A stretch of 64,000 nucleotides of DNA, taken from contig JALMLS010000568.1 in the NCBI GenBank assembly GCA_038496445.1, forward strand, positions 1 through 64,000. Reading direction: 5' to 3'. The translations under genes and the position numbers were made by a program. The notes beneath the pieces were generated by a model. The model saw only the letters and a list, made by a program, of their open reading frames with translations. It searched no databases and was not told the DNA's origin. Positions within the stretch are counted from its first letter, which is position 1. The number at the start of each line of letters is the position of its first letter. Positions 8,630 to 56,254 of this stretch are shown piece by piece. This DNA is from Trichosphaerium sp. ATCC 40318. Taxonomy: Eukaryota > Protista > Tubulinea.

Positions 8630-9573
8630 ATGGCAACTACACTGACAACATTTAAACAAGAGTTTAATGGTACTCTTATGGTATGTTACAACACTGCACA
8701 GTCAAATTTGCACGTTGACTGTTAAAGTAGGATCCTGTTCAAAGAGAATGGACTATACGCAATAAGAAGGAGTTTAAAGAGTTCCAAGTGCGTACTTTAT
8801 CTAATACTCTAACTAAACCTTAATCAAGGCTTCTATGACGCGCACACGGCCAAAGTTCGTACCTAGAGCAAAGAAAATTGCTGGTTGGGTTCCAAACACA
8901 GAAACACTATTCGCAGATCCTCCAAAGTTCGACTGGGACAAAGTCATGCTTATCGTATGTACAGCTAAGGGAGTTTCAAAAATAGCACAAACAATTAGAA
9001 AACGCGTCAAACAGCCCGAAACAAGCTCCGTTACGCTTAATTTTATTCCCCATCGCGTATTCTATTGGTAATTACCTCTCTAAGGATCTTAGGCGTATGC
9101 TGGAGCAAAAATCGATAAAATTGCCATTCAAAGCGGTGTAGCAAAAGTATCTGGAACGTACACTCCACAAGATAACAAGTATCATGCCGTTGTAGTGAAA
9201 TCAAAGGCAATTTCTAAGGTTGAATTCTCTTCAAGCGGACGGTAGGGTCATTATTGTCTTACTTGACTAGTCTTTTCTTTGGTTGAAACTAAATTGGTAT
9301 AGGCGTTCTATTCATTCAAGACCGCGACAATCGAAAGGAGGACGTGCTCCAGTTAGGAGACCTATATCACAAGAACCTGCTATGGATATGGGACCTATAT
9401 CTCAAAGGTGTACTGATGATGGTCCTGAGTTTATGCAAATGGAGAGTGATTGTCCTATGATTGAACAAAGGTGTACTGACGATGGCCCTGAGTTTATGCA
9501 AATGGAAAATGACGGTCCTATGATGGAACAAATGTGTGCTGGTGGCCCAGAGATCATGCAAGTTCCACAATAG
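8630..9573 (+). CDS. Hypothetical 4-exon protein with a possible PrcB-C-like domain and C-terminal 21-aa tandem repeats
   Basis: Spliced MATTLTTFKQEFNGTLM|DPVQREW...PPKFDWDKVMLI|AYAGAKIDK...YHAVVVKSK...|RRSIHS...; head-to-head with DRG1. Confidence 0.7.
9403..9570 (+). repeat. 63-nt coding tandem repeat (QRCTDDGPEFMQMExDxPMxE x2 plus a partial copy)
   Basis: caaaggtgtactgaYgatggYcctgagtttatgcaaatgga occurs twice 63 nt apart, followed by a degenerate third copy. Confidence 0.9.
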
Positions 9574-20100: not shown

Positions 20101-23100
20101 TTCCAATTCGCATCTCCTGTGCGATGGATAGAAACGCAACACCTTCTTTTTGGTGAAATGAATATACAACGCTTGATTGAGGTAGGACCAGCGCCTACAC
20201 TACTCTCGCTAGCCAAGAGGACTCTTACTCTTCAGCAAGTACGTATTACCTTTTGAATGTACTGCACAAGAAGGTTGCTTGTGTACCCAGCCTTCAGCAA
20301 TTTTGATTCTTTGAGACTTCTATTTTTAATTGATTGTATCTACTAGGAGCAATATACTCCGCTTATGCCAAGAGAAATCCTTTGGATAAAACGTGATTTC
20401 GATGCTATTTACTATAACGTAAAGAATGAAGAACCTGCCGCACCTCAAGCAGAAAAAAGCCAAGTCCCAGCGCCTAAGGTTGTAGCTCCAAAGGCGGCAG
20501 CACCAGCACCAGTAGCAGTAGTACCACAAGCTACTTCTTCAGCGTCTGTACCTGAGGCTGATATAACAGCGCTGGCATTTGTTACTACACTTATTGCTTC
20601 TAAACTGAAAAAACCAATTGGTGATATCAAGCAAGCTGATACTATCAAACAATTAACTGGTGGAAAGAGTGCACTACAGAATGAACTTGTAGGTGACATC
20701 GAAAAAGAATTTGGTGGAAACTTACCAGAGGTACAGAATAGTTTGTTTGACTTCAAGTCTAATTTCTTTCGTAAAAAAAAGGGCGCAGCTGAAATGGGTA
20801 TTGGTGAGTTTAGTGGGAAGATTACATCCTATAATACTCTCGGATCTGTTGGTAAATCTCTCGTACAGAAACTTATATCATCTACAATGCCTGGAGGTTT
20901 CAGTATGTCCAAAGTGAAGGTACATACTAGCAACCAAAACCCATTCTAAATTTACTTTCAGGCGCACTTGAAGTCTACTTTTGGTCTTGGACCAAAAAGA
21001 AGTGATGGAGTTTTGCTACATGGTATAACAATGAAACCATCAAAACGTTTAGCAAATGCAAGCGAAGCTGAAGCTTGGCTTGGTAAAGTAGCAAGCGCAT
21101 ACGCTTCGCACAATGGAGTGTCATTAGGAAGTGTATGAACTCTTAGCTTTCTTTCGTTTTGTAATTCTTTACCCTAGGGAGCTTCTGCATCACCTGCTTC
21201 TGTTATGACTATGGCTGCCCCAGCAGCTGTAGCAAGACAACCTATCGCTGATAAACCAGTACGTTGAAGCTCAGAAAAAAAGGTTTAGTGTTAACCTTTG
21301 TTTCAGGTATCTGCTTTGAGTGTGATGCGTACAATCGTTGCTATGAAGCTGAAAAAACCAATCGGAAGTGTATCTACTACTTCTACAATCAAAGAACTCT
21401 CTGGTGGTAAATCAGCTCTTCAAAACGAAATACTCGGTAAGAAAGTAGTCAACACGTGTTTTTTTAACTTACAATCATTGTTGTAGGTGACTTGGCAGCT
21501 GAATTTGGCAGTGAACCTGAGGGCGCTGGTGAGAAACCACTCTCAGATCTTGCTTCGAGTATGGGCTCTTCATATTCTCAGTTGGGATCTCATGCTAGCA
21601 CGCTTGTAAGAAATATGCTTCGTGCAAAGATGCCTGGCGGTTTTGGACAATCTCAGATTGGTCAATACTTATCTGATAAATACGGTTTGGGACAAGGTAG
21701 ACAAGAAGGAATTCTACTCCAATCCCTTCTTGAGGCTCCTAAAACTAGATTTGGAAGCGATACTGAAGCAAAGGCTTGGTACGCATTCGAGTCATTTCAG
21801 CGCTATTATCTTACGTTCTGCAATAGGTTAGATGGTGTAGCGTCATCGTATGCTTCAAAGGAAGGCATTAATCTCAGTGGCGGAGCTTCTTCTGGTGTTG
21901 CTGTAGCAGGAGTGCAGTTTGATGGAGCTGCGCTTAAAAAGTATAAAGAGCAACAAGAAGTAATGATTCGTGAACAGCTTGATGCATACTACACCTTCTT
22001 AGGAGAAGATCCACTGCAACACCAAAGGTGAGTCTCGAAAATCTTTGCTTTTCACATCATCTCGTACTTATGACATTGTAGAGCTTTGCAATCTCGAGAC
22101 AGCATTGTATCTGAGCTTCAAGAGCGATTAGACTCTTTATCTACTGAACATGGTGGTGATAATTACTTTAAAGGGATACTACCTGTTTTTGATGAAAGAA
22201 AAACAAGGAGGTATAATTCTAGTTGGAATTGGACTCGACAAGATTGTTTGACTTTGTATTATGATTATGCATGCGGTAGAACTCCACGTGCGTTGTTTAT
22301 TATAACACTTTGTGGTCTGTTACAGGTTCGTTGTTTGCTGATATCTTTTGTTCAGAATGGAATCGTCAAATTAGAGAAAGATTGTATCATATTAAAAATA
22401 GAGCAACACATGAGTGTGCTACTATGGTTCAATGTTATATTACTAAAGCTGAGACAGATGGGTTCCCAGTTATTACATCTTTTATCAAGTTCCTTCATGA
22501 GCTATTACAAGAAGTGTTGTCAATTGAAACACCTGCATGTTACAGGCAAGCTCGCTTCTATTATTTTTTTTCGAAGAACGAAAAGCTGATAGTTTCAAAT
22601 AGGGAAATCCAAACGCCTACAGCTCCTCATGTACAAGTAGAAGACAATGGTAAAATCAACTACAGAGAGTTCCCTCGGGAGAATCTAAGAGATATTGCGC
22701 ACTATGTTGGTACGAAAACTAAAAAACAACGAAAAATATGAGTTTTTTGTTGATTGTCTTTCCCAGATGAAATGCGTGAAGGGCCAAAACAAGGACCTCT
22801 ATCAAATACTTCAGACAGTACCACTACAAAAGAAAATGGAAAATCTGAGATCGAGGAAATCGTCAAGTCACTTATTGCTGCAAAAGTTGACCAGAAAATA
22901 ATTGATAGTGTTAAGAGCAAATTTTCAGCTCTTACAGACGCAGTTGAGCAAGTTGAGAAGCGTGTACAAATGCCTTATCTTTTCTTACAACGTGCTGATC
23001 CAAATGATCCTTCAACACGTGTTTATGATAAAGAAGCAACAGACTTCTACTTAGACACCTTGAAGAAAATATCTGATAAAGGTTTCACTTTACAAGGAAA

Positions 23101-26100
23101 GGTAAATAATTGTTTATTTCAAAGATTTCTTAAAAACACGTTTTTATGCACGTGATTTCATGATTTCGCACGTTTTTTTATTACATCGTTCTAATAGATT
23201 ATAAGGTTGTTCTTATCACTGGTTGTGGTCGCGATTCTATTGGTGAACAGTTGCTTAAAGGACTTTTGAGAGCAGGTATGTTTGTTAATGCTGTATCTTC
23301 AGTTTTTTGTTTGAAAGTGTTTGCTTTCTTACTATTGTATTACAGGCGCTAAAGTTTATGCTACAACATCTTCTTTTAGTACATCAAAGTCGAACTATTT
23401 CAGATCTTTGTTTGATAACCATGGCGCTAAAGGCTCAGAACTGATAGTTGTTCCATTCAACCAAGTACTTTTTTTCATCGAAACCTTTTGAACCTTTAAT
23501 GTTATTTTCGTAAATCTCTTGTCCTTGAACTTTGTTTTACCAGATAGCGTTGTACTTGATAGTTTATTCATTTCATTTAGGCATCAATTCAAGATATTAG
23601 CACTCTTGTAGACTTTATTTATGATAAGGAGAAATCAGATGTAGATTACATATTACCGTTTGCTGCTATTACAGAGAATGGTAGAACTATTGGTGATGTT
23701 GATGGTAGATCAAGATTATCTCATCGTATTATGTTAACAAACTTGATTGTACTTATCGGTACTGTCAAGAACAAGAAGGTACATACAAGCGAACCATTGT
23801 CTCTTCAAAATATGTTAATTAATTCCGATTTTTTTCTTAGGCTAAACTTGGTATTGTTACACGCCCTGCTCATGTTATACTACCGTTATCACCTAACCAT
23901 GGTATATTCGGTTTCGATGGGTTGTATGCTGAAAGTAAACTTGGCCTTGAAGCGTTGGCTAACAAATGGAAATCAGAAGGTATCTTTCGGGTTTTTTTCT
24001 CTTTTTTTATCTACCTGTTTGGGCGAATAATTAACTGTTCATATTATAGATTGGAAAGATTATGTTAGTATTGCTGGCGCTGTAATAGGTTGGACCAGAG
24101 GAACCGGACTTATGCAACAGAACAACATTATCGCTCCTGTACATCTTTTTTTGTTAAACGCTTATCTTTTTTCACTTTCAGCTTATTGTACTCTAGGGCA
24201 TCGAAAAGCTTGGAGCTCGAACCTTTACAACCCAAGAGATGGGTTTCAATATAATGGGTCTGTTACATCCTGCTATGGTCAAGAAGGTGAGTTATAAATA
24301 CTTTTCTTTCTGCTTAAAGCAGAATGTTTGTTGTTTTCGGATTGTCTAAGTAATGTGATTTAGGCTCAATATGAACCTGTTTGGGCTGACTTCAACGGTC
24401 TTTTACACTTAGTAGATAATCTTAATGATGTCCTATCTAAGCTCCGTGACGCTCTTTATGAAGAGTCTAAAATCAAAAAGGTGCGAGATTGTTATTGCTT
24501 GTATCTTAGTTGCTTAAAATGCTTACACTGCTTAAAGGCAATTGCTATGGATAATTCGCTTGATAATGAAAGTACCAATGGAACAGCAAAAGCTCCAGTA
24601 GTTGAAGTAGAACCAAGGTACGACTGCTTGGAATTCTTTGTGATATTAACAGCTTCCTAGGGCTCATAATATTTCCTTCTCATTCCCAGAGTTGCCAGGA
24701 AAAGAAGACCTTGAGAAGATGAAAAAACTCAAGTACGATTAACTGCAATTTGTTATTGTTTACTTGGTTGTATAGGGGTATGATTGACTTGGAAAGTACA
24801 GTTGTTGTAACTGGATTTGGTGAATGGGGTCCGTTAGGTATGGCCAGGACTAGATGGGAATACGAAGCCTACGGTATGTCTTTCGGAGGTTTTTTTGTGA
24901 ATTTAATTATTGTTTATAGGCGAGTTTACCTTGGAAGGTTGTATTGAAATGGCTTGGTTAATGGGTCTTATCAAATACTCTTCTGATCCAGCAAAGCTTG
25001 GATGGGTTGATACTAAAACAAAAGCCTTAGTACCAGATCACAAGGTACCTTTCAAATCACTCAATAATTTCTGACGTTCTGTTTTTTTAAGATCAAAGAA
25101 GTTTATGAAAAGATCATTACAGAACATACTGGTATACGCCTTATTGAACCGGAGTTATTTGATGGATATGATCCAAAGAATAAGGTACCAAGAGAATTTT
25201 AGGATTACTTTTGTGTTAGGGAAGTGTTAATTTATTAATTTCTTTTTTTTTAGATGTTCCTTCAACAAGTTGCTATTAATCATGACATGAACCCTATTGA
25301 AGTATCACCTGAAGAAGCTCAAGAATTCACAAAGAAACACGGCGATAGCATAGATGTATTTGAACGTGATGGCGCTTTGTTCATGAAACTCAAAAAAGGT
25401 AAAAAACTCTTTCTTTCAAAAATTCTATTTTGACCGCTCGCCTTTCGTTATGAATGATAGAGCTAATATATTTACAAAGGTGCTGTTGTATACATTCCAA
25501 AAGCAAGAGCATTCACACGCCTTGTTGCTGGTCAAGTACCTTCATTTTGGGATCCAAAGATCTTCGGTTTCCCAGATGATATTTTCAATCAAGTTGATAG
25601 AGTTACTTTGTACACTCTTATATCATGTGTTGAAGCTTTATTGTGTAGTGGAATAGTTGGTAAGGAAAACACCACAATAATTTTTTACGGGCTTTAAACT
25701 CACTACTTTACTTCTAGATCCATATGAATTCTACAAGTTTGTACATGTATCAGAAGTAGGAAACACAATAGGTACAAATTTTTGAATCAAGATTTGACAA
25801 AAAGCATCAAATCAGTTTGCTTTTTTTTCATCTCACAGCCCTTTATTTTAACCTTTCTGGTAGGTGGCGGTATGGGTGGTATGAATAGTATCCGTGATGT
25901 ACATAAAAAAAGATTCTTGGATCAATCCATACAAGGAGATGCTCTACAAGAGATGTTCATAAACACTGTAGCAGCATATGTAAATATGCTCTTATTGAGC
26001 TCAAGCGGTCCTATTAAAACACCAGTTGGCGCTTGTGCTACTGCTGTTGAGTCTGTAGATATAGCAATGGATACAATCTTACAAGGAAAGGCTAAAGTAT

Positions 26101-28909
26101 GCCTGGTAAGTACACGTGCAAACAATTTTTACTTGATTTTGTTTTGTTTTTGTGATGGTTATCCGCTCTTTGACTTTACTGTAGGTCGGTGGTTACGACG
26201 ATTTTGGAGAAGAAGGAAGTTTCGAGTTTGCTCAAATGAAAGCTACTTCAGACGCTGAGAAGGAGTTAGCGGCAGGACGTGAACCTCGTGAAATGTGTCG
26301 TCCTTCAACAGATACAAGAAGCGGGTTTATGGAATCACAAGGTTTGCCTTTTTTTTTTGCATGTTTCTCATAGCGTGAGTCTGCAATCATGATATTAATA
26401 TATCTTTAGGTGCTGGTGTCCAAATCATAACTACTGCTGAAGTTGCAATCAAAATGGGTACTTGTGGTTTAAACTGAAGGTTGTTTTTATTAATAGTGAG
26501 TTATAGGTCTTCCAATATATGCTATTCTAGCTCTAGTTAACACTGCAACTGATAAACAAGGAAGGAGTGTACCTGCTCCAGGACAAGGTATTCTAACTAC
26601 TGCTCGTGAACGACCATTAAGCTTGGCACATCCAATGTTGGGTATGTAACTGTTTTGAAGAAAAACTTCGCAAGTAACACGATTTAGATATTGAGTACAG
26701 AAAGCGACTTCTTGATCAAGAGAAGGAAAAAATATCTTCATGGAAGGAGAAGGAGTTAGCATACTTTAAAGAAAAGGTTGTAGAGCAGTCAAAGACCAAA
26801 TCATTATCAGCGGCAGATGCAACTAGGGTAACTATTCTTTTTTTTCCTTTATTTTTCTTATCTTCTTTGCTTGTGTACTGTTGTTCTAAGTTCTTTCTGT
26901 TTAGCTATCTGAAGATAACAAAGCTGTTGTTGATCAATTAGCCAAGAGAAAGCTTCGTGCTGCTTATGATTGTTACGGTAATGGCTTCTATACGCAAGAC
27001 AATACAATAGCTCCACTTCGTGGTGCACTTGCTGTGTATGGACTAACTATTGATGATTTGGCTGTTGCGTCATTCCATGGAACTGGAACAAAGCTTAACG
27101 ACCTAAATGAAACACAAGTACTTCAAGCTCAACTGGAGCATCTCGGTAGAACAAAGGGCAACATCATATTTTCGATATGGCAGAAGCACCTAACAGGACA
27201 TCCTAAGGTACAAACTTTTTCTTCTTCTTCTTCGAAAAATTTCTCTCTCTTGCAAAACCGATTCTCTTTTGCTTGTTCTTCAACAACAAAACAAACATGT
27301 TCTGTGACTGATTTTGAGAGTTTGTACATCAATTTAGAAGGTCTTTTGAAGCAATTGTTTGAAAAATCAATCAATTTTTTTTAATTCATTTTGTTGTTTG
27401 TCTTTCTCGGTTGCAATAGTCTTACGTACTGTTAAATAGGGCGCTGCAGCTGCATGGATGTTGAATGGTTTGATACAAAGTATGCTTTCAGGAACAGTAC
27501 CTGGTAACAGGAACTGTGATAATGTAGATAGAGAGTTAAAGAGTTGTGATCATGTTGTTTTCTTGAACAAGTCTTTGCAGACATATGGTTTCAAAGCTGG
27601 TATACTAAAGAGCTTTGGATTCGGTCAAGTTGGCGGTGAGATACTTGTAGTACATCCAAAGTACATTTTCTCCCAGTTAACAGTACGTGAATGATCAAAA
27701 CACTTCAAGAAAGAAAAAAAACAACCAAAACTCGTTTCGTTGTATGTTTGAATGAATAACTCATTTCTGTTAAGGATGAAGAACTATCTGAATACAGTCA
27801 AAAACGTCTTTTACGTGAGCAAGCAGCTTACAGGCATTTCCAAAACGCTATCACAGGTAAGAAAGTTAACAACAGCTAAATACGTTTTCCTTTACTTTTT
27901 TCTTTGAATTTTTTGTTTATTGTTCAATTCCTAACTATGTACCACAGGCAAAGCCAATTTTATTAACGTTAAAAACATACCTCCTTATGGGAAGGATGAT
28001 GAGATGCGTGTTTACCTTGATCCACTCGCAAGAGCTTCATACTCAAAGGCTCATCAAACGTATGTTTTTCTTTTTGCTCCGAAACGTTTGCCACTACTCT
28101 TTGTTGTTTCTTCATTACTTATATTCTCTTGCTCTAGATATACATTTGGAAATGTCAAAAGCTCTCCAAGGAAACGTAAGAGTGCTCCAGAACCTCTTAA
28201 AACGTTACCTGTATCACGTACTCTGAGCAAGACTCAGTCTCATTCGAGTTTGGTTCATTTGGAAGTTATGTTAAGAGAAATGGGTGAAACACAACGCAGT
28301 GCCTTTGACCAGTACGTCATAAAACTACAAGCCGCCTTATCATAGTATATTAACATTAAAAACAGGGGTATCGGTGTAGACGCTCAATCAGTTTCAGAAA
28401 TAGAAGCAAGACTTACTTCAAGTGCTGAGTTTACAACAAGAAACTTTACACCAAGTGAAATAAAGTACTGCCAGTTATCAGCAGATACAACAACAAGCTT
28501 TGCAGGTAAGCAATCAATTCATCATCATCTCCTAAACACAACCTCCAAACAACCTCTCACACCAACCTTTGTCCTGTAAAGTCTCAAGCTATTGTTTCAT
28601 TGAAACATTTCAGTTTTTTTTTGTTTATCATCTATGTGTCACAGGACTCATTTTTTAATAGGTCGATGGGCTGCTAAAGAAGCTGTTGTTAAAGCAATGA
28701 GCTCTTGTGATGAAAAAGCAAAGTCTATGTGGCTTGGAGGCGGTGCACCATTGATCGATATTGAGATTCTTCCTGGAGCTTCAGGTGCTCCTGTTGTACA
28801 CCTTCATGGTCATGCAAAGGCTGTAGCCCAAGCACTTAATGTCACAAAGGTTAAAGTATCTATAAGCCATAGCGGAGAATACGCTGTAGCACAGGCATCA
28901 GCAAGATAG
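11168..28909 (+). CDS. FAS: Single-chain fungal-type type I fatty acid synthase (FAS1+FAS2 fused): AT-ER-DH-MPT-ACP-ACP-KR-KS-PPT; more than 50 introns
   Basis: AT GHSQG (~12700); ER VAGMTPT and [12 protein letters not shown] (~14690); [10 protein letters not shown] (~18120); MPT GHSLGEY (~19152) continuing into [13 protein letters not shown] with no stop or restart; two GGKSALQNE ACPs; [13 protein letters not shown] and PLSPNHG; [27 protein letters not shown]; PPT GIGVD...[12 protein letters not shown]...SISHS. The start codon is the best guess. Confidence 0.95.
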
Positions 28910-29047: not shown

Positions 29048-30091
29048 ATGAGCTTCTCCGGTATTTCGATTGATCAAGCATTCAATCACTATCGTAGTAA
29101 CCACCCAGAAGAATTCAAACAGGTTATGGAAGAGCAAAGAGAAATATTCACAAAACAACTTGAAACTACTCTAAATATCGTAAACAGCAGCATTATAAAA
29201 CAACTAGATGATATTCTGTTAAAACAAACGCACACGTCGTTAAAACAAGCGAACAAGATCGAATTCCTTACCGAAACCAATGAATCAGCTCCAAAACTAA
29301 AACAGCTGCTTCAAGAGTAAGCACACAAGTGATTTCTGTCTTTCGCTGAATTTGAACTGTTTGAACTTGTTTCTGCCTAACAATAACTCTAGTACACCTT
29401 TGATATCGAGGGACAAAGAACGAAACCTGATGGACTTTCCTCCAGAGGTTATTTCGAATATTCTACATCATACAGAAGCAAAAACAAGGTTTTCTGTTGC
29501 TCAATCATGTCACCTGATGGCCGACATCATTCACCGTATTGTTGGATACAAAGAAGTTGTCTTTCAAAAATCTCAGATATTTTAAGGATAAGAGAGTACA
29601 AGGGTATAATGAGCAACACTGAAATTTACTTAGATGAGTATTTACAAAATCACACTATATACTCATTGTTATATGGCTGTAAACATATTGATGCATCTAT
29701 GGGTAATATCAATGATCGTGATCTTGAAGACCTTGCAGGAGTTCATTCAATTGATCTTAGTTCTTGTGATCATATTACAGGAGAAGGGATTAAGAATTTG
29801 AAGGGTGTACATACAATTAACCTTGCGTACACTGCAGTTACAGATGAAGGCATCAAATCACTCAAAGGTGTTCATACAATTGACCTTAATGAGTGTTTTT
29901 ATATTACAGATGAAGGGATTAAGGAGTTGAAGGGCTTTCATAGAATTGCTCTTAATGATACATCAGTTACAGATGAAGGTGTAAAGGAGTTATGTGGTGC
30001 GGATTATATTAGTCTTATTGGGTGTGATGAAGTCACAAATGAATGCATCAGATCGCTTCGAGAAGCCTCAGTAACAGTGAGAAGTCGCTAA
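29048..30091 (+). CDS. F-box/LRR protein with a helical N-terminal exon; one frameshift at an A-run (~29570)
   Basis: Exon 1 (29048-29316), a phase-2 intron, then F-box LMDFPPEVISNILH and GVHTIxL...ITDEGIK repeats. One extra A in caaaaa joins the two ORFs (FQKISDILR). Confidence 0.8.
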
Positions 30092-38970: not shown

Positions 38971-39503
38971 CCTCCTAATAAATTTGTGACAGTTTTTTTT
39001 TTGTGATTTTTCATGACGACTCCTTTGGCCGGTACAATAGATAAAATTAGAAGCTTCGCGTTGATTACGTAAATGTGAACACGACAAATGCTTGAGCATA
39101 TTACTAGGCGCCTTTCAAGGCCAATCTATGCGCTTTCAGTATCTTGTAAAGGGTAGGCGCCAATAGTGAGTGTGGAGTGGGTTTTTTATAAATCACGTGC
39201 CTTTTGTTAGCTTGCTAGCGCTCTTAAAAAACAAAGTTTTTGTTGAAAAATCCCGTTCGCGTTACGTTTTATTTTACAACACAGGTTCTCCATCGAACCT
39301 GGGGTTTGCCACTAACCACCTCTTGCAATCTCCATGATATTGGTCACTTGTTCTCACCTCAACATAACACGTGATTGTAAAAATGTCTGTCCGTGACTCA
39401 TTTTGACTCTGTAAAAAAAAAGAAAAAAAACAGAAATTAGAATCTTCTTCAGAACTTTTTAGTGCAGCGTTCATACCTGCAAATATTAGATTATAGCTAC
39501 AAT

Positions 39504-40740
39504 ATGTCACAACAACATCTAGATACCGAGTTTCAAAGGTATGCGCCTATTTTTCTCTATTTGACGTCTAACACTTCCGCAAGCACACCAATACACATTT
39601 TAGACTTCCCGACAGAGATTCTGGCACATATTTTACGTCAAACAACTAAAGCGCGATTAGCAGCTTGTCAAACGTGTCATATCTTTGCTTCTATCATTCA
39701 CAATATTATTGGGTACAAACACGTGTGGCTTTCATCAGTCAATGAAGCAAAAGCGCTGTTAAAATACAGTAGTACTCTACGCCATACAAAAATCACAATC
39801 TTGTTTGATTTTTGTGAGGCTACTTCAAAACTATTTGCTGGCGTTCATACTATCAATCTCAGTAACCGCGCCAATAATACAGATGAGTGTATAAAATCGC
39901 TTTCAGGTGTTCATACTATTAATCTCAGTGGCTGCTATCATATTACAGATGAAGGTATAAAAGCGCTTGCTGGCGTTCATACTATCAATCTCGATGGTTG
40001 TCAGAATATTACAGATGAAGGTATAAGAGCACTTTCAGGTGTTCATACCATTGTTCTCAGTAACTGCCATATTACCGATGAAGGTATAAAAGCACTTTCA
40101 GGTGTTCATGCCATCGATCTCGGTGCTTGCTATCATATTACAGATGAAGGTATAAGAGCACTTTCAGGTGTTCATACCATTGATCTCAGTGACTGCCATA
40201 TTACAGATGAAGGTATAAGATCGCTTTCTGGCGTCCATGCTATCTATCTCGGTGGTTGTCAGAATATTACAGATGAAGGTATAAAAGCGCTTTCAGGTGT
40301 TCATACTATATCTCTTGAATAATGACAATATTACAGATGAAGGTATAAAAGCACTTGCTGGAGTTCATACTATCAATCTTATGTGTTGCAATCATATTAC
40401 AGATGAAGGTATAAAATCTCTATCAAGTGTTCATAATATTGATCTTAGACGTTGTAATATAACAGATGAAGGTGTAAAAGCACTTTCAGGTGTTCATGCC
40501 ATCAATCTCGGTGATTGTCAGAATATTACAGATGAAGGTATAAAAGCACTTTCAGGAGTCCATACCATTGATCTCAGTGGTTGTGACAATATTACAGAAG
40601 AAGGTATAAGATCGCTTTCAAGTGTCCATACCATTAATCTCTGTGATTGCAAAAATATTACAGATGAAGCTATAGCATCACTTTCAAATGCTTGTGATAA
40701 ATTATTTACTAATAAATATATCCTTCATGACATTATATAG
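39504..40740 (+). CDS. F-box/LRR protein with 13 LRRs of 21-22 aa; frameshift at ~40320 (possible pseudogene)
   Basis: MSQQHLDTEFQ, 45-nt phase-2 intron, F-box ILDFPTEILAHIL, then GVHxIxLxxC(x)xITDEGI(K/R)xLS repeats across 39840-40686. Confidence 0.85.
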
Positions 40741-41369
40741 CCATATAAGATTTGACATAGACTAAGTGCTTTATTGTTCCTAATATATTTATGTTGTAAT
40801 CAGCTGTAACAATGCAAATAAAAGATGCTCCACAGTCTCACACGTACTTATTCATTAATGGACTAAAAGTACATTCATTGATTGTTGTTGCACAATGGAT
40901 GTATGCATTTGAACAGTATGTATTAATCTTAGACTTAATAGCTACAATAAATGGGTTTGTGTTTTTTGGAGCGTTATATGTGCTGGCTGGTTTTGCAAGA
41001 ATCTGACTTTGCTTGCCTGCTGACGGTGAAGAAGAGTGTAGATATAACAAGTATGCATTTGCCTGTGGGTTGTTTGTAATCTATTTGGAACCTACGAAAT
41101 AGTCACGTGTCAACAGTCAACAATATTGTTTATAAAACTGCAAGAATGGTCGCTTTTATCCATCAGCACTTTTTTAACAAATGTTAATGAACGACATCCT
41201 TTCAAATGAAATAGTTTTTTTACTGTTTTTTTTTCAACTACTAGCTGGCAAAATATCTGTTATCTCTTTTTTGACCAACACGTTTATTGTTAGTGTTGGC
41301 CAGTACCTAAATCACATTCACTGAGGCTTTTTTTAGCCTGGCAATACACAATGCTGATATTTTCAAGAG

Positions 41370-41860
41370 AAAAGAAAAAGGTATGAACTTGTTCCAATGC
41401 TTCAACACCTTTATCTGTCACATTTCTGCCAATACTAATAGTATGAACCCCGTTCAATGAAATGATACCTTTATCTGTTACGGTATCACAACCAGTAATA
41501 TGGATTGTATGTACTCCTGCAAGCGCTTTAATGCCTTCATCCGTAACAAATGTATTGGAAAGGTCAATAGCATGAACGCCAGCAAGTGCTTTGACACCTT
41601 CATCAGCGATTGAAGTATAAATGGAGGCTATTTTCGTGTACACCTTTTAACATCTTAATACCTTCATCAGACACATTTCCTTAGATTAATTATGTACGCC
41701 CACAAGAGCTTTTATACCTTCATCTGTCAACACATAGTTATCATTCTGATTATATTATGTACTCCAGCAAGTGCTTTAATGCCTTAATCAGTAACTTGAA
41801 TACAGTGGCTAAGGTCAATGGTATGAACTCCAGCAAGTGCTTTAACACCTTCATCTGTAA
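41370..41860 (-). pseudogene. LRR pseudogene of the same family, opposite strand
   Basis: Fragments TDEGVKALAGVHTIDL, DEGIKALVGVH, GVHAIDLSNTFVTDEGIKAL in shifting frames with stops; no F-box seen. Confidence 0.8.
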
Positions 41861-47616: not shown

Positions 47617-48398
47617 ATGAACAGGTACATCTTACCTCGCGTTAATAATAACAACTCAACTATTGAGATAGGACGCTAGATTACTTTCCACCTGAAGTTC
47701 TATGTATTATTTTCTCCAAATTAACCCATACTCGATTTGCTGTGGCTCAAACGTGCTGGGTATTCTGTAACGTTATACATAATATTGTGGGATACGTTAA
47801 AATTAATGTAACGTCAGCAAGAGACCTCAGACGTATCACCAGAAGTTTCGCAAAATCGACGGTAGTAGATTTTGTTAAACATCACAATGTCACAGATAGG
47901 GAGCTCAGCTGGTTAAAAGGATGGCATACAGTTGATCTGAGCTATTGTTACAACATTACAGGAGAAGGAGTTGATGGTTTACTGAATATACACACCGTTG
48001 ATCTTTGCTATTGTAGGCAGTTAACCGACAAAGGTATACGTTCTTTCGCTGGAGTACATGCTATAAATATTGAAGGATGTACTTACATAAGTGATATCGG
48101 TATTGCTGCTCTTTCCGGCGTACATACTATAAATATCTGTGCTACTTCTGTAACTGACATTGGATTAAAACAACTTATCGGATTACATACAGTTTATGTA
48201 TCACATATCGTAAGAAAAGAAGTCGTCAATGATATCGAGAATGCTGGTGGTAACGTATATAATGTAAGTGCAACACACAAGGATTTGAGCAAGTACTATT
48301 ACTCGAAGCCCAAATACTATTACAGTTCTAGAAAAATGGCACGTAATGTTAATTCGTTCAAGTTTTGTAGTGTTGTAACTCATAATACATTTTTATGA
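47617..48398 (+). CDS. F-box/LRR protein (about 5 LRRs)
   Basis: MNR with a phase-2 intron, then TLDYFPPEVLCIIF (F-box), RFAVAQTC...IHNIVGY and HTVDLxYC repeats; head-to-head with RPC5. Confidence 0.8.
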
Positions 48399-48774: not shown

Positions 48775-51159
48775 ATGACAGAGCCAGCACCGCAATCTCT
48801 GTCAGTGTTAAAATCGAGGGTACGCGCTTGTGGGAGGTAGTAATTGGCGCAATATTAACAATAACGATTTTAGCGTGCCAGAAAGTTAAAAAGTCGCTCG
48901 TCTTCACACCTAGCACCTGGTGCTACATCGCAACACTGGTGGCAAGATAATATCACCGTAAAGCGAAAACTTTACAAAACTACGTTTATATTAACCTATG
49001 GGTATAGTATGACGAATTGAGGACATCAGCATTGCTTTCACGACTTCGACGGGTGATGAGACCATCACTCTTCGACACGCAAATTCTGCGTTACTATTTG
49101 GGTGCGTAGCGCATTATTTGTCAACAGTACACTAATGAATGGCAGATTATGGACGAACAGGCTATGTAACGAAGGAAAAATTTAACGTTTTTACCAGCGC
49201 TTACGGGCCACCTGCTACATGCATGAGAAAGGTACTATAGCGTTTGTTAAAGTTTTTACCTTATTAGCCTTATTCGAAACAAAGTCACAATTGATCTTTA
49301 GGTCCGCCCATTGTTTTATAAGAGTTACTTTGCTGGGTGGCTATCACGAGAAGACGCAAGGTATGTTTTTCTGACTACACGCTCCAAAACAGAAATTCTT
49401 TGCGCATCTTGTTGCAGTCGTTATACTTATGCTTGTAATTAGTAATTTACTGGCGAAGTGTAGTGTTGGGACGTTTTTAGTACGGTTTAGTATTGGATCA
49501 CCTCATCTAAGCGTTGGTACGTATTTTACGACTAGTAAAACATAGGTGATGACACTTTAAGAAATTGTGTTTTTTTTTCAAAGTACTTTTTTGATTTAAT
49601 GGTTTTTTACAGCCTATGTCGAGCAAGGTGGAGCTACTATAAACCATATTCGTATTATGTGCGAAAAGGGTCATTTCTACGCTACTTCGGCGCTTAGATT
49701 CGAGTCAGTTGATGAATTAGTTGATCATTACAAAAAATACCTTCTACACGCTTGTGAGCTTGGGTTAATCACAAAACACAGGTAAACCAGTGGTATAATA
49801 ATTATTTGTAATGATTGTTTTTTTTCAGATTTTTCTTCACTGGTTTTGATAGAACTAAAGCGGATGATTTGCTTTCTAGTCAGCCTGGAGGAAGGTATGT
49901 CAATGGTTTTGGTCAAGTATCAACTGAGAATTTTTCGGTTTTTTTCTTATTGTTTTTGTAGCTTCCTCTTCCGCTTCTCGTCTCAACCAGGACACATAAC
50001 GTTGTCTTATGTTAATTCAAAGGAAGAAACTGTTCACTTACCTATAAAAGTGCGCACGCGTAAAGGTCACTTTCTATTCTATTGCTTTAATGGCGAGTAC
50101 ATGTCCTTATTGGATGTACAAAGAAGTCAAGCTCAATTATTAAAACGTCCTCAATCTTCATTCCCGGTTCCATTGGGTACGTTTGAAGACTCTATGCACG
50201 AATTATTTAGTTAAGGCGAACTTATCTATTTTGTAGAGGTTGATACGCTTAAAGTGTTTGCTGAGCAGGGTAGTAAGCTGCAAATAGAGATAGCGTCTTT
50301 GGAGGTAGCGAACTGGCTTAAAACAGACAAGGGTAGTCTGTTAGAAAAAGCATCGTCTACGCTGCTTGCATTGTGTGAAAGCGAAGGTATGATCTTTACG
50401 TACATGCATGTTTACAACTTTTTGTGTTTAGAAAATCGCGAAGTTATAGCAACGTATAACTCAATGGACTTTATGGTATCACTCTTAGGTGGTGAGATTG
50501 ATGATAATGAGATTGTACAGAGCAATTGCTGCCGCTTAATTGAGATATTTCGCCGTGATGGTAAGTTAGACATGCTTTACTTTAAGTGTTCATTTTATTT
50601 TTGTAGAGAAGCTCAATGTACTACTAAAAGGAGCGCCTAAGGATATACGTGCTCCTATGCTTAAACGTGGTATAAGTAATGTCAGTCGGATATCAGAAGC
50701 ACCACAGGCAGATCTAGAAGCATACGCTCAATTACCTTCAGTTGCTTTTGTACGCTCCTTCTTTCTGTTTGAAGTTTTTCTCTTTTCACGTAGTGAATTT
50801 TTGTTTACGCGTTATTTTAGCAAAAAGTGAAGCCTACAAAGGCGCCTGTTACATACGGGTTTGTACCTGCCAAACGAAAAGAAATGAACAAACCAAAAAG
50901 AGAAGATAAACCAGAATTCAAATATGATGTGCTTCCTGTAGTTAAGCACCGACCGCGTCGTTCTTCAGCGCCTAATTCCCATAAACCTTACAAACAACCA
51001 AAGAAAAGTATTTCTGAAGAAGTTCATCGCAAGAGGTCTAAAAAAACAAGTACGTCTTGTTGGAAGTGTTCTTGTTGCTTTAGGTTCTATTCTAAGTATG
51101 ATTTAGGTATATGGGAAGGTAATAAGTCAGCTAGAACGTTCGATTCTAGATTTTCTTGA
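48775..51159 (+). CDS. EF-hand-like + tandem SH2 + ARM-like protein with a Lys/Pro-rich tail, multi-exon
   Basis: LDYGRTGYVTKEKFNVFTSAYGP; SH2-1 YFAGWLSREDA..LL...GTFLVRFS...FESVDELVDHY; SH2-2 FLFRFSSQPGHITLSYV; helical ARM-like ASSTLLALCESEENREVI. The 3' end is uncertain (51159 or ~51200). Confidence 0.8.
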
Positions 51160-52173
51160 CAACAAGCAAAGAACCAAAAGAAAAAAAAAAGAGAACATAA
51201 TCTTATTGTACACTAAAATGTAAAAGTATAAAAAAAGTTGATAATTACGCTGTGTTTATAAGGGAGACTGACATTCTTATCGTTTCAGGCAACCTGTCAA
51301 GAAGTTCTTGTGGGTTGTCTATTTGTTGTTGTTGTGTATCCTTTAAAGTAACGTTTATCAGCAAAAGGGTTGAAGTGAAGAACATTAGTATCAAAAACCG
51401 TTGATACATTGTAAAAAAATCAGAAGACGTGTTGGAGGAAAAACTCGCACTCTTTGGTGGACTCTAGTGTAGCCACACGCGTTTGAATACTTGCAGAATT
51501 TTGGAATTGACCCTCAATATGTCAGAACTTGTGTTGACGACTAGTGAAATACCTACATTGTTGCTGTTGCTAGTAGACACCAGGCGATTTTATTCTACAC
51601 CTTTTTTTGTTTGTTTGTACCATTCAAATAGTATTGTGCCGGACTAGTTAGTAAGGGTAACTTGTAAATGCACAAAAAAAAAAGTGAATTTACGTCTACG
51701 CTAAGAATGTACGGATACTATATTAGCACATTGTACGCATACGTGGACGTAGCTACTTACCCAAAGTGTGCTAGTGTTTACGTTTACTTTTGTTTATCAA
51801 TATGGTGCGTTTTCCACCAAATGGCACTACGCAACGGTAATGGTGCAATTTCTCATAGATAAGACGCATTACGCGATTACTCAATAGTATGGTATTCGGA
51901 CAAATACAAACTCTTTGTTTGAGTTTACCTAAGCTCCTTGCGGCCGCAAAGTGCATGTTAGATTCTTAGTTGAATGTTATGAAAACGCAAGTAGAGGAAG
52001 TTCTGGTTAACTACTCGGCGACCAGAATCGATCGAAAAATGCTTGGAAGGTATCCTAAGCAACGTATGTTGCACTATAGGAATTGTTTCAAGGCATATTC
52101 CTTTTTTAGGTTGTTTAAATACTAATTAGGAAACAGCATACCAAAATTGACCAACATAACTACATAACTTCCG

Positions 52174-52741
52174 ATGAGAACACTACTCGTAACACTTGTT
52201 GTGTTGTGCTTGGCACTTGTAGCCGTACAGTAAGTTTGAACAAACCGAATACCGCCGCCCAAACTAACTTGTATTCTCCTTTAGAGCAAAATCGCGCTAT
52301 GGCGACCGTGGTTTCGTTGGTAGAACATTAGCCTTTTCCACTGACCCACTTCGTGAACGCAACAGGGACAATGGACAAAGGAGACTAGCCTTTTCCACCG
52401 ACCCACTCCGTGAACGCAACAGGGACAATGGACAAAGGAGACTAGCCTTTTCCTCTACTAGACCACTTCGTGAACGCACGCGCGACAATGGAGAACGTAC
52501 CTTAAGTTTTAAGGGAAGAGATCGCTCGAACAGGGAATACATTAATCGTCCACAAAGCCGATTTGGTGACCGTGTTGCAAATTACAACGATGACTACCAA
52601 AGAGCACTCGAGAGAGTAAACAACAGCCGCTGGAGACGTGGTGGTGGCAGGCTTGCCTCAAACTACAACGATGACTACCAAAGAGCACTCGATAGAGTAA
52701 ACAAGAGCCGCTGGAGACGTGGTGGTGGCAGTCTTGCCTAA
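52174..52741 (+). CDS. Secreted repeat-peptide precursor, 170 aa, 2 exons
   Basis: Exon 1 (52174-52229) encodes signal peptide MRTLLVTLVVLCLALVAVQA; intron 52230-52284 (gtaagt..ctaac..ttag); exon 2 is open to TAA 52739-41 followed by aataaa; 513 nt in total. Confidence 0.85.
52328..52510 (+). repeat. 57-nt coding repeat x3 (LAFSTDPLRERNRDNGQRR)
   Basis: Units start at 52328, 52385 and 52442. Confidence 0.95.
52580..52738 (+). repeat. 81-nt coding repeat x2 (NYNDDYQRALERVNNSRWRRGGGRLAS)
   Basis: Near-identical direct copies starting at about 52580 and 52661. Confidence 0.95.
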
Positions 52742-53409
52742 ATAAACTGTTTCAGTTCAATATATAAGTTGTTTGTGTACCATTGCCGGTTTTGCACTCT
52801 GTCTACGACAAGACCTCAAGAGGTATTTTGTTGAACAAAGAGTAAGTTCATTTGTCACTTTATGTTTTTGCAGAGGGGCTAGACTTTATTGTAGCGTTTT
52901 CAGATTAAATCGCTTCTCCTTGAAGTTTGCTCATAAAATGCCTTTTTGAAGAATTGTTAGGAGCGCTTCTCGGTACTTATTTGGTGAGTGCCGGGTATCT
53001 GTTCCAGTAGTTTTTAGAGGGGTGCCAGCATCTAGGTACTGCTATCAACTTGTGTCTTCCTTACTACGTTTGCATTTGTTCGCATCAAATATGCTAGTGC
53101 CCTTGTCTACGCTGTTGAAGCACGATACTTCACTGCATTTTGGGCATTCAGAATCTCACCATTCGATCACATCCCGTACGGTTTGTAACCGGAAATATAA
53201 GACATACATTCAAAAAGTTGTGTTCTAAACAATGTACAAAACGAGAACCGCTCATTTGTGATCATATAGTTCTTGTGAGATGATGTAGTACAGCCACTTC
53301 AATTTCAAGAGATAGTTTTGTTTTGACCGCACGTGAATTGACCCATTGTTGTCATTATTTTTCTGGAGAGATGTATTTCTCAGACTTTTTTTGTACCACA
53401 AACGTAAAG

Positions 53410-54965
53410 ATGGCAACAACAGACTTAGCGGAGCTCATAAACGATAATTTAGAACCTTACTATGCTCTGTCTAAGACATTCGGAGGCCCCGTTGCTGAAC
53501 AGGTAAAATTAGATCAAAAAGTAGTTGTTTCGCCTCAAACCGCGCCTGTGGTTTGTGCAGCAATTGTGTTAGCACATTTTGGCTATTTCGCTCTATCTCA
53601 CTAAAAACACAAAGGCGGACCTCGTAAAAAAAGCTGTTGATCTTGAATTTTCACTTGTTAAAAAAGCGACAGGCACAAACAAACCAGCTCAAGCAGTCTT
53701 CATGAAGGAGGTTGAACCTATCAACAACCTCATGAAGCAAATCAGCGGTATGAAGGACAAGAATAGAGGTCACAAGCACTTTAACCATTTGAGTTGTGTT
53801 GGTGAAGGTAACCCTTTTTACACAAAAAGTTAGTGTTATAATGACTTTGTATGTAGGTGTCCAAGCACTCGCTTGGGTTCGTATTGAACCTACACCAGGT
53901 CCTCACGTCAAAGAAACTATTGGATATGCTGAGTTCTGGACAAACAAAATCCGTTCAGAGTTCAAGGGAAAGTGCGTAGTCCTTTATCACTAAGTTATCA
54001 ATGCTGATGTACATGTTAAGAGATGAGGAACAAATCAAATGGGTTGAGGGTTTCACTGGATTCTTGAAAGCTGTACTTTATTTTGAAACCTCCTCCGAGC
54101 ACTGTACACTGTAACACTGAGCTAATATGGTTTAGCTCGTTGTTTACATCAAACAACACCACACAACAGGTTTATCTTGGGGTACTGGTGCTACTGGCGA
54201 AGCCGATCCAGCAGGTATGCCTTGTTGCTACAAGCGTAAATGTAACTAGTTTGTTTTTCTTAGTTGCTGGTGGCATTGATGGTATTATCAAAGAGTTCCT
54301 CGAACCATACGTTGCAATGTCTACAAAGATTGGTGGTGTAGTCTCTGTTCAAGTTAGTTTTCTTTTTAGAATGTCGTTCTCACGTGATTGGCTTAGGCTA
54401 AAGTTTTCGAAAAAGCTGTAAAACTTGAAGGTGAGCTCATCAAAAAGGCAAAGGAAATGAAGAAGCCTTCTCCAGCTGAATTGCAAGAACTCCTTGCGCC
54501 TATCAGGTACACCTTTTTTGCGTTCTAGCCACAGGTATCATGTTGTTTTGTGTTTATTAATTTGGGATTGCTTAGAAAGGAGACGATGGCTGTTTCAGCT
54601 TTCAAAGATAAGTACAAAACTCATGTGGATATAAACTATGTTGCTGGTGTTGCTGAAGGTGTTGCTGTATTAGGATGGATTGCTGTTGAACCAGCTCCTG
54701 CACTTTATGTTAAGGACGCTATTCGTAGCTCTGCTAAATGGACAAGCAAGATCCTTGCTGAGTTTAGGGGAAATTATGTATCATTTGATCGTAGAATGCG
54801 AGGTAATACAGGTGAAATGCAAAAGAATTGGGTTAGGGCACTCAACGGATTTTTATCGGCTGTGCGGATGTCTTTGTTGTTCGTTGTTCCCGTTTACTCA
54901 TTTTTTCTTAGTTGGACTCATTCATCGAGGCTGAGCATTCTACTGGATTGACATGGGGAAAATAA
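53410..54965 (+). CDS. Protein of two tandem CAP (cyclase-associated protein) N-terminal helical domains, with no WH2 or CARP
   Basis: Unit 1 LEPYYALSKTFGGPVAEQA...KDKNRGHKHFNHLSCVGEG..ALAWV...AEFWTNKI...HHTTGLSWG; unit 2 LEPYVAMSTKIGGVVSVQA...VAEGVAVLGW...EHSTGLTWGK*. Confidence 0.85.
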
Positions 54966-56254
54966 ATTTTGATTTAGTGATCTTATCCTTTTGTACTTAT
55001 TAAACAGAAATTTCAGAGTGGTAGTAGGTAATAAAATCTGTTTAATCATTTTTATTTTTTGCATTTTTTTTTTGTTTTTTCCTATTTTTTGGAATTATTA
55101 CACCTGTAATAGAGCATCTTCTAATCGTTTTGGTATCTCTGGCTGCTTTAGAATTATCTTGAACCTGGTGCAACCTCTAGATTTAGAGGGGAATACCTAT
55201 AAATCCCTAAAGATCCATTGAATAGCAGTAAATTCAACCAATACTATGTACTAGATGTGCAGCGCGCCTAAACATGCGATTTAGGATAATTCTAATTGTT
55301 GCGAAAAGACAATTGCAATTGAGCTGCGATTATTACTTAACAAGCATTGTGAACTTCTTTTTGGTTGAAACCCCAAATATGTAGAACTTTGTCAAAAGAA
55401 GTCAAAAATTCGGCACACTAATTATCCTATATTATGCCATAGGAACTATTTAGAAAGCCCCGTTTTCAGGGGGTTGGGGGGAAGAGCCTAGCGGCGACTG
55501 AGCGCTATAACCCAGTTGTCTCCCTTTGTGGCGAACAGTTCAATATCACTTTGACATTTTTTCGACTTTTTTTTCGACATTTTAGTACACACCCCTGAAA
55601 CCAGTAGCTGCGCAGTTCGCTTTTTGCGTTACTACCGAGTTCACTGTTTTATTAGTTTGCAATGAGACTGATTAGACGCTACGACGGTCAAAATTCATTG
55701 GTGTTGAAATCACAAATGGTTGAAAAAAGGGTTATGTGGAGAACTTGGGAAAACAGTTTAGTAAGCACGCGATGCTTCAAAAGATGCCATTGCCTTTTTA
55801 GTAAATGAACTTACAAAAATAACCGCTCTGTATTTATCGTTTGTAGGCGCCACGCACTGGACAGTGTCTAGGCGCTTGTATGTGTCTATTTGGTAAATTT
55901 CAATTGGGCAAGATGAGGGAACAAATCTGCTAGCGGTGTATTTTCGGAACAAAGTATTGATAGGCGTAGTTTGCAGTTTCTAATAAATGGAAGTCTGAGT
56001 CCAATGACTGAAAATGTGAGGTGACATTGAAGCACGTGCGTTGTTTTTCTTAGCGCCAAAGGGGCTACATAAATAAAGGTTCATTGTATGGCTTTTTTCG
56101 AAAAATGACACAAATAGTTATAAAATACCGTTGATGTTTGTTTTGCGAAGGCGCCTTTAGTGTTTATTTGATATTAGTAACACGTGACTTAAAATATTGT
56201 TTTAATAGCTGTTTTTGTTTACCCATTCACCAACCCGTGCCTCATCTCGCGAAG

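Follow-up and report, generated by a model that had tools for sequence, protein, structure and literature searches.

Introduction

Precursors that carry several copies of a peptide are well known in animals, fungi and plants, and the antimicrobial naegleriapores are a further case; to our knowledge, free-living amoeboid protists offer hardly any example of diffusible ribosomal peptide signals made from multi-copy precursors.

Fungal Kex2-processed repeat proteins (KEPs) are defined by a signal peptide without a transmembrane segment, at least four fragments at KR or RR sites, at least three similar fragments and repeats that make up at least 15% of the length; among 1193 known KEPs, 77 combine two kinds of motif (Le Marquer et al., PMC6339444). 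The S1P/SKI-1 protease recognizes R-X-(aliphatic)-Z, where X is not P or C and Z is not V, P, C or E, and RRLA is the cleavage site of LCMV GPC (PMC8310232); its plant orthologue, SBT6.1, processes propeptides of secreted signaling peptides, RALF23 and GLV1 among them, at RXXL/RXLX sites (PMC4983112). The naegleriapores of Naegleria (cited in PMC5850478) show that precursors holding several peptides exist in an amoeboid protist.

The locus analyzed here lies within a 64-kb window (the whole stretch of DNA that was analyzed), and was read in an earlier note as a secreted precursor whose repeated cassettes, delimited by R-x-L sites, would be released as two families of short Arg-rich peptides. 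We compared this locus with the systems above, using its gene structure, RNA contigs, repeat architecture, candidate cleavage sites, homologue searches and genomic surroundings.

Gene structure and transcription

The gene model consists of the following features.

52114..52121, + strand: TATA-like box TTTAAATA, about 53 nt 5' of the ATG; a pattern match with a putative function
52174..52229, + strand: exon 1, with the ATG at 52174; encodes MRTLLVTLVVLCLALVAV and 2 nt of a Q codon (signal-peptide part)
52230..52284, + strand: phase-2 spliceosomal intron of 55 nt, GTAAGT...ACTAAC...TTTAG; skipped in RNA contigs of runs X1 and X2
52285..52741, + strand: exon 2, with the end of the signal peptide (Q-A), the mature chain and the TAA stop
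52741..52746, + strand: AATAAA polyadenylation-like signal, overlapping the final base of the stop codon; a pattern match

As read from the sequence, the spliced coding sequence is 513 nt long and encodes 170 aa followed by TAA. An unspliced reading from the ATG at 52174 runs into a stop two codons after MRTLLVTLVVLCLALVAV, and exon 2, an open frame of 151 codons, lacks an in-frame ATG 5' of the repeats. The ACTAAC within the 55-nt intron resembles a branch-point element.

RNA evidence was taken from contigs of two RNA-type public runs (X1 and X2), which came from different samples and studies and were mapped on 51800-55000. The 52229-52285 joint, with GT..AG, was found in RNA contigs of both runs, with shorter sides of 62 and 37 nt and no mismatches, and no RNA contig covered the intron at 52230-52284. 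Contig depth was zero over 51800-52120 and 52763-53404, with the first cover of the gene in the bin 52121-52227. On exon 2, X1 contigs lay at 52285-52381, 52352-52438 and 52562-712 and an X2 contig at 52285-52351 plus 52409-52528, again with no mismatches in either run. Cover that is limited to the exons, together with the intron-less joint, shows that the contigs derive from RNA, and the GT..AG at the joint places the transcript on the + strand. The latter also rules out an antisense ORF of 81 aa at 52297-52542.

Taken together, these results show that a two-exon gene at 52174-52741 is transcribed and spliced on the + strand. The model put forward in the earlier note, a signal-peptide-like exon spliced to an exon lacking an ATG, is thereby confirmed by both the sequence and the RNA joint: the intron for which that note had called for an RNA check was skipped precisely in the two runs, and the transcript that it expected was represented by contigs on both exons in two independent samples.

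Predicted signal peptide and repeat architecture

By hydropathy scan and reading, the N-terminus has the n-h-c layout MR / TLLVTLVVLCLALVAV / VQA|K. An 11-residue window of the h-region has a mean Kyte-Doolittle value of 3.2, the hydrophobic run extends from T3 to V18 (16 residues), and the putative signal-peptide cleavage site is predicted after VQA at residue 20, before K21. By this layout and hydropathy the N-terminus resembles a signal peptide, in line with the earlier note. It could alternatively be an uncleaved signal anchor or go unused, which would leave a membrane-tethered or intracellular product, for example an Arg-rich protein that binds nucleic acid. At 16 residues the hydrophobic run is fairly long, and the chain carries RD/RE-rich tracts of the kind found in nuclear proteins; however, T3-V18 falls below the typical length of a membrane span, and V-Q-A puts small residues at -3 and -1 with K coming next, in a classical n-h-c layout; we regard an anchor or an intracellular product as very unlikely. 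We hold with high confidence that this is a real and expressed gene whose product is probably secreted.

Beyond the predicted signal peptide (residues 1-20), the protein is laid out as a linker, three close A units and one degenerate A-like unit, a second linker and two B units.

52289..52321, + strand: N-terminal linker KSRYGDRGFVG, resembling the second linker SRFGDRVA; sequence reading
52322..52378, + strand: cassette A1, RTLAFSTDPLRERNRDNGQ; TRF and unit alignment
52379..52435, + strand: cassette A2, RRLAFSTDPLRERNRDNGQ; opens with RR and RRLA sites
52436..52495, + strand: cassette A3, RRLAFSSTRPLRERTRDNGE; diverged, with one extra residue
52496..52579, + strand: degenerate fourth A-like unit, RTLSFKGRDRSNREYINRPQ, and the second linker SRFGDRVA; sequence reading
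52580..52660, + strand: cassette B1, NYNDDYQRALERVNNSRWRRGGGRLAS; furin-type RWRR, an N-x-S sequon, predicted helical
52661..52738, + strand: cassette B2, NYNDDYQRALDRVNKSRWRRGGGSLA; TRF and unit alignment

TRF reported one array with a period of 57 nt (2.2 copies, 97%) and another of 81 nt (2.0 copies, 95%), and the DNA of the repeat units is 91-97% identical. The two-cassette polyprotein layout described in the earlier note is thus real, as are the two copies of NYNDDYQRAL(E/D)RVN(N/K)SRWRRGGG(R/S)LA, which is the B consensus, and the spacer starting with RTLSF. Its three A copies held in part: A1 and A2 are close, but A3 is not exact, having one inserted residue and three substitutions. Each B unit contains one N-x-S sequon (NNS in one, NKS in the other) and a DDY motif. 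The fourth A-like unit has RTL(S/A)F and R(D/E)R.NR(E/D) in common with the A units; within it RTLSF survives in otherwise diverged sequence, suggesting that constraint is strongest on this pentapeptide. In addition, the similarity of the linkers SRYGDR..V and SRFGDRV points to an older internal duplication that was kept in frame.

The RNA contigs also bear on the number of A units. The X1 contig at 52352-52438 runs without a mismatch from the last part of A1 through the whole of A2 into A3, in support of three units in the array. In the X2 contig exactly one A unit of 57 nt (52352-52408) is missing, at a place where 45 nt are ambiguous and the depth is only 2; the missing unit may reflect collapse during k-mer assembly, as the ambiguity and low depth would allow, or a repeat-number allele.

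Properties of the predicted mature chain

The predicted mature chain has 150 aa, of which 35 are Arg (23%), a pI of 11.6, a net charge of +19, a GRAVY of -1.6 and no Cys, and is marked by an alternating R-D/E-R-N-R-D pattern. AlphaFold2 run without an alignment gave a weak model (pLDDT 55), in which the linker, the A array and the spacer all had pLDDT values under 50, no confident fold was obtained for residues 1-90, and two helices with GGG between them lay over the B units (pLDDT 65-78). The mature chain is accordingly predicted by this model to be mostly disordered except for the two B-cassette helices.

These properties are compatible with a protein that is secreted and acts whole, as an unprocessed, disordered, polycationic repeat protein. 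Its repeats would then supply multivalency rather than peptides, and its roles could include binding to polyanions (polysaccharide of the cell or cyst wall, polyphosphate, nucleic acid or the surface of bacteria) or service as a matrix or adhesive component. The Arg content, the pI, the charge and the alternating pattern all speak for an uncut protein, as does the lack of a confident fold over residues 1-90, and orphan repeat proteins like this one are common. Further evidence on this alternative came from the comparison of repeat units and from the site counts, and is given with them below.

After trimming of the terminal RR, the A peptide has a net charge of 0; the description of the products as Arg-rich peptides therefore fails for the A peptide in net terms, and a reading of this peptide as a strongly cationic amphipathic antimicrobial is out. 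The B helix is modestly amphipathic, with a muH of 0.44-0.48 and a mean hydrophobicity of about -0.7.

Sequence constraint and homologue searches

Of the changes that separate A1 from A2, four are synonymous and one is nonsynonymous (T versus R in the x position of R-x-L), giving a pS of 0.30 versus a pN of 0.023 (Fisher p=0.011), which weakly suggests purifying constraint on the A peptide sequence, on five changes only. For B1 and B2 the counts are one synonymous change and three nonsynonymous ones, and their divergence looks neutral and recent. For a protein that acts uncut, the apparently neutral B units are what might be seen, but the synonymous excess between A1 and A2 speaks for constraint that acts on the precise sequence of the peptide, beyond composition alone.

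Homologues were sought with exon 2, the part encoding the mature protein. A word-index search of 5.8 billion proteins returned no match to the mature protein, exhaustive phmmer on 1.84 billion representative proteins found no homologue, and there were 0 matches in a JGI metagenome scan and in Pfam and PDB. The best score in the ESM Atlas (0.72) was at noise level, within the range of shuffled proteins, and tblastn of the 64-kb window detected no paralogue. On these searches the gene is a lineage-restricted orphan, with no conservation seen beyond its own genome.

An orphan of this kind could be a young gene, born de novo or evolving quickly, that lacks a settled function, its repeats produced by replication slippage and its motifs incidental. 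The failure to find homologues in the databases searched or a paralogue in the window would fit such an origin, as would the high DNA identity of the repeat units; in addition, a codon-usage score ranked the proposed frame best of the six frames yet was only marginally positive, and contig depth was about 2-18, compared with 10-100 for the neighboring gene. Several observations weigh against it: the splice joins a well-formed predicted signal peptide in frame to the 151-codon open frame, the GC content of the coding sequence is 49.5% versus 38-39% in the flanks, transcripts occur in two independent samples, A1 and A2 show the synonymous excess described above, and the related linkers imply an older in-frame internal duplication. 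We consider a young gene without settled function unlikely.

Candidate cleavage sites

Three site codes were compared, with motif counts set against 20,000 shuffles. The dibasic pair RR occurs exactly four times, at residues 51-52, 70-71, 136-137 and 163-164, in the contexts QRR|LAFS (twice) and RWRR|GGG (twice), so that A2, A3, B1 and B2 have one RR each and no other part of the protein has any. RR is depleted (4 observed versus 7.9 expected, P(<=4)=0.049; 2 versus 5.7 in the non-redundant sequence, P=0.033), which is as expected under avoidance of internal dibasic sites, and the alternating pattern of Arg and acidic residues would give the same. Both RWRR sites fit the furin consensus R-X-[K/R]-R, a motif whose count is at chance (2 versus 1.9), and in the weak AlphaFold2 model the surroundings of the RR sites are predicted to be disordered or to lie at helix ends beside GGG. 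RR is missing at the start of A1 and at the A3/A4 junction. The amidation signal G[KR][KR] is absent from the protein, where the sites read GQRR and WRRGGG, and an amidated neuropeptide was rejected on the lack of G-KR.

R-x-L is enriched, with 7 observed versus 2.5 in the shuffles (P=0.003) and 5 versus 1.65 in the non-redundant sequence (P=0.008), and the R-x-L boundaries drawn in the earlier note are real and enriched across the A array, except that in its fifth boundary, GRLAS, R and L are adjacent and do not form R-x-L. The four A boundaries (RTLA, RRLA, RRLA and RTLS) fit the S1P motif R-X-aliphatic-Z; the count of this motif over the protein, 6 versus 3.3, is not significant by itself (P=0.085), and the true count is 5 once RPLR, where X is Pro, is excluded. 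The B boundaries (DRVA|N and GRLAS|N) have no R-x-L and do not fit the S1P motif, and inside the B units RALD (B2) fits whereas RALE (B1) does not. No single site rule, RR or R-x-L, delimits all of the cassettes. Furthermore, the tandem duplication is recent, as the 91-97% DNA identity shows, so that recurrence of the boundaries is mostly its by-product and not independent evidence for cleavage, and the phase in which a boundary is drawn within a tandem array is arbitrary. The RR pairs, which the earlier note leaves undiscussed, are more orthodox candidate cleavage sites than R-x-L.

With these counts, the case for a protein that acts uncut can be weighed. RR below chance means that a dibasic-cleavage reading is not forced. 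Against it stand the retention of RxL[A/S]F in the degenerate fourth unit and the full furin consensus of RWRR, exposed beside the GGG linker, in addition to the A1/A2 comparison. We judge the uncut protein to be distinctly possible, though doubtful.

The earlier note likened the boundaries to PEXEL/TEXEL, the export motif in which an aspartyl protease of the ER/Golgi cuts R-x-L after the L, as in apicomplexan exported proteins. An R-x-L soon after the predicted signal peptide is indeed shared, with RTL 12 residues past the predicted cut, and RRL is the same as the first three TEXEL residues. The analogy does not hold further. Position 5 is F, and not E, Q or D, at all four boundary sites; the sole RxLx[EQD] match, RPLRE (residue 78), is a chance-level occurrence (1 versus 0.4) within A3; the motif is reiterated and not single; and the gene content of the window, with its single-chain fungal-type FAS, SH2-like ORF and F-box/LRR_6 arrays, is not apicomplexan-like. 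As the pentamer R-x-L-x-(E/Q/D) is lacking at the boundaries, we rejected PEXEL/TEXEL export, which we hold to be exceedingly improbable.

Comparison with described precursor systems

The locus is most readily set beside fungal KEPs, including yeast MFalpha1 (PMC6339444, PMC7329392, PMC5850478), with which it shares a short chain composed mostly of near-identical cassettes and RR between cassettes, beside an N-terminus that resembles a signal peptide. Like some KEPs, it has two motif types within one precursor; the L-A that follows RR in the A units resembles the STE13 X-A signature of KEPs; and repeat number may vary, as the X2 contig that is short of one unit could imply. When the KEP fragment test was applied, the four RR pairs gave 5 fragments, of which fragments 1-3 each contain an A unit, with similarity judged by eye, and the repeats covered 34% of the protein for A alone (3 x 19 aa/170) and about 65% for A and B, relative to the KEP cut-off of at least 15%. 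The locus departs from KEPs in having no sequence similarity to them, a host that is probably not fungal, RR only and never KR, junctions without a dibasic site at A1 and A3/A4, and only 2-3 close copies of each motif. By layout, it could be a KEP-like secreted multi-copy peptide precursor, unrelated in sequence and probably outside fungi, with cleavage itself plausible but put forward tentatively.

Like the S1P substrates RALF23, GLV1 and arenavirus GPC (PMC8310232, PMC4983112), the protein has sites that fit the S1P motif, and its RRLA is identical to that of LCMV GPC. Those substrates have one or two sites and no reiterated array, in contrast to the A units, and a clean site is lacking in the B cassettes. 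Within the window, the only DNA that was read, no S1P gene was seen.

Antimicrobial polyproteins (naegleriapores, apidaecins and magainins, cited in PMC5850478) likewise hold several related peptides per secreted precursor. Whereas naegleriapores have Cys-rich saposin-like domains, the orphan protein is without Cys, and it differs from antimicrobial peptides in the net charge of 0 of the trimmed A peptide and in the only modest amphipathicity of the B helix. Metazoan neuropeptide and prohormone precursors also combine a predicted signal peptide, repeated cassettes and basic sites, but the present protein has no Gly before a dibasic pair, no KR and no homology to them.

Genomic surroundings

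The orphan gene stands alone between two + strand genes. The upstream gene has an SH2-like exon at 49846-50214 (+), with the core FLFRFSSQPGHITLSY...HLPI... and a Pfam SH2 match of E=0.0014 that is just under the gathering score; next to it comes a tail exon rich in Lys and Arg, and further ORFs extend to about 51160. Fungal origin would be less likely for DNA that encodes a stand-alone SH2 protein. Downstream, at 53.4-55 kb, lies a CAP-related gene in which many introns of 49-112 nt are visible in RNA. Many of the X1 contigs over this gene (53405-55000) were 90-95% identical and had shifted joints, beside others that matched better; the mismatching contigs represent either cross-mapping internal helical-domain copies or paralogues, or a close relative in the sample.

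Elsewhere in the window, a single-chain fungal-type FAS occupies approximately 12000-28000 (+) and contains many short introns; its exons in the ACP region are at 20365-20949 and 21492-22031, the latter matching FAS alpha residues 192-351 in PDB entries. An RPC5 gene and an NHL-repeat exon are also present. F-box/LRR_6 genes at 39462-41643, 29507-30091 and 47742-48398 are built of GVHTI(N/D)L...ITDEGIKAL repeats of about 22 aa, with TRF periods of 66, 129 and 195. The clusters of the ESM Atlas nearest to the LRR array are F-box/LRR families of giant viruses (Nucleocytoviricota) and, by structure, a family of Chlamydiota; both groups are associated with amoebae. Indirectly, the F-box/LRR_6 arrays, together with the SH2-like ORF, favor an amoeboid protist over a fungus. 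A 63-nt tandem repeat at 9403-9541 (+; 2.2 copies, 88%) has one open + frame, QRCTDDGPEFMQME(S/N)D(C/G)PM(I/M)E, and is possibly coding. Searches for rRNA, tRNA and Rfam families gave no match in the 64-kb window. The products of nine ORFs of the window had no exact match, the RPC5 ORF returned no hits, and neither the PDB matches of the CAP and FAS exons nor the literature on fungal-type FAS in amoebae was informative about the host.

Proposed processing

The best single mechanistic explanation of the locus, to which we nevertheless give somewhat less than an even chance, is a polyprotein that subtilisin-like convertases would cut into A and B peptides. In this scheme, in which we infer secretion, cleavage, the choice of sites and any activity, the product would enter the secretory pathway by way of a cleavable signal peptide, with the predicted cut at residue 20, as a 150-aa polycationic and mostly disordered chain organized as a linker, four A-type units, a linker and two B-type units. 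Subtilisin-like convertases of the Golgi or the secretory pathway would then carry out limited proteolysis. Cuts behind the four RR pairs (QRR|LAFS and RWRR|GGG, each twice) would fall to an enzyme of the kexin/furin type and, additionally or instead, an S1P-like enzyme could cut at RTLA|, RRLA|, RRLA| and RTLS|. Either route would free A peptides of 17-19 aa and helical B peptides of roughly 25-27 aa, which may act extracellularly as signals or antimicrobials. Acanthamoeba castellanii is reported to carry three genes of kexin-like type and a single S1P-like one (bioRxiv 10.1101/802215), which makes both enzyme types plausible in such a lineage.

Counting for processing by convertases are the splicing and exon-limited RNA cover in two runs, the exon boundary at the end of the signal peptide together with the features of that peptide, the depletion of RR, the RWRR consensus, the fit of the A boundaries to the S1P motif, the retention of RTLSF, the synonymous excess between A1 and A2, and the passing of the KEP cut-offs for fragments and repeat content in silico. 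Counting against it are the missing RR at the A1 start and at A3/A4, the absence of R-x-L at the B boundaries, the lack of Cys, of a G-KR amidation signal and of homologues, the lack of any sign of constraint between B1 and B2, and a test of A1 against A2 that rests on 5 substitutions. Additionally, the adjacent helices of B1 and B2 in the low-confidence model may form a small folded unit, which counts against separate peptides.

A bolder version of the convertase scheme is conceivable, in which an amoeboid protist would make diffusible signals or pheromones from a multi-copy polyprotein, its cassettes freed at R-x-L-(A/S) by an S1P-type convertase with or without kexin cuts at RR. This would amount to a KEP- or neuropeptide-like system outside fungi and animals, with a non-dibasic code, and we think it quite improbable.

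Conclusions

Short genes for secreted proteins are missed by annotation based on ORFs when, as here, the start codon belongs to a signal-peptide exon of its own. Should the protein be left uncut, the finding shrinks to an ordinary orphan secreted repeat protein. As it stands, the gene is a concrete, expressed and readily testable candidate for convertase-processed repeat peptides in this lineage.
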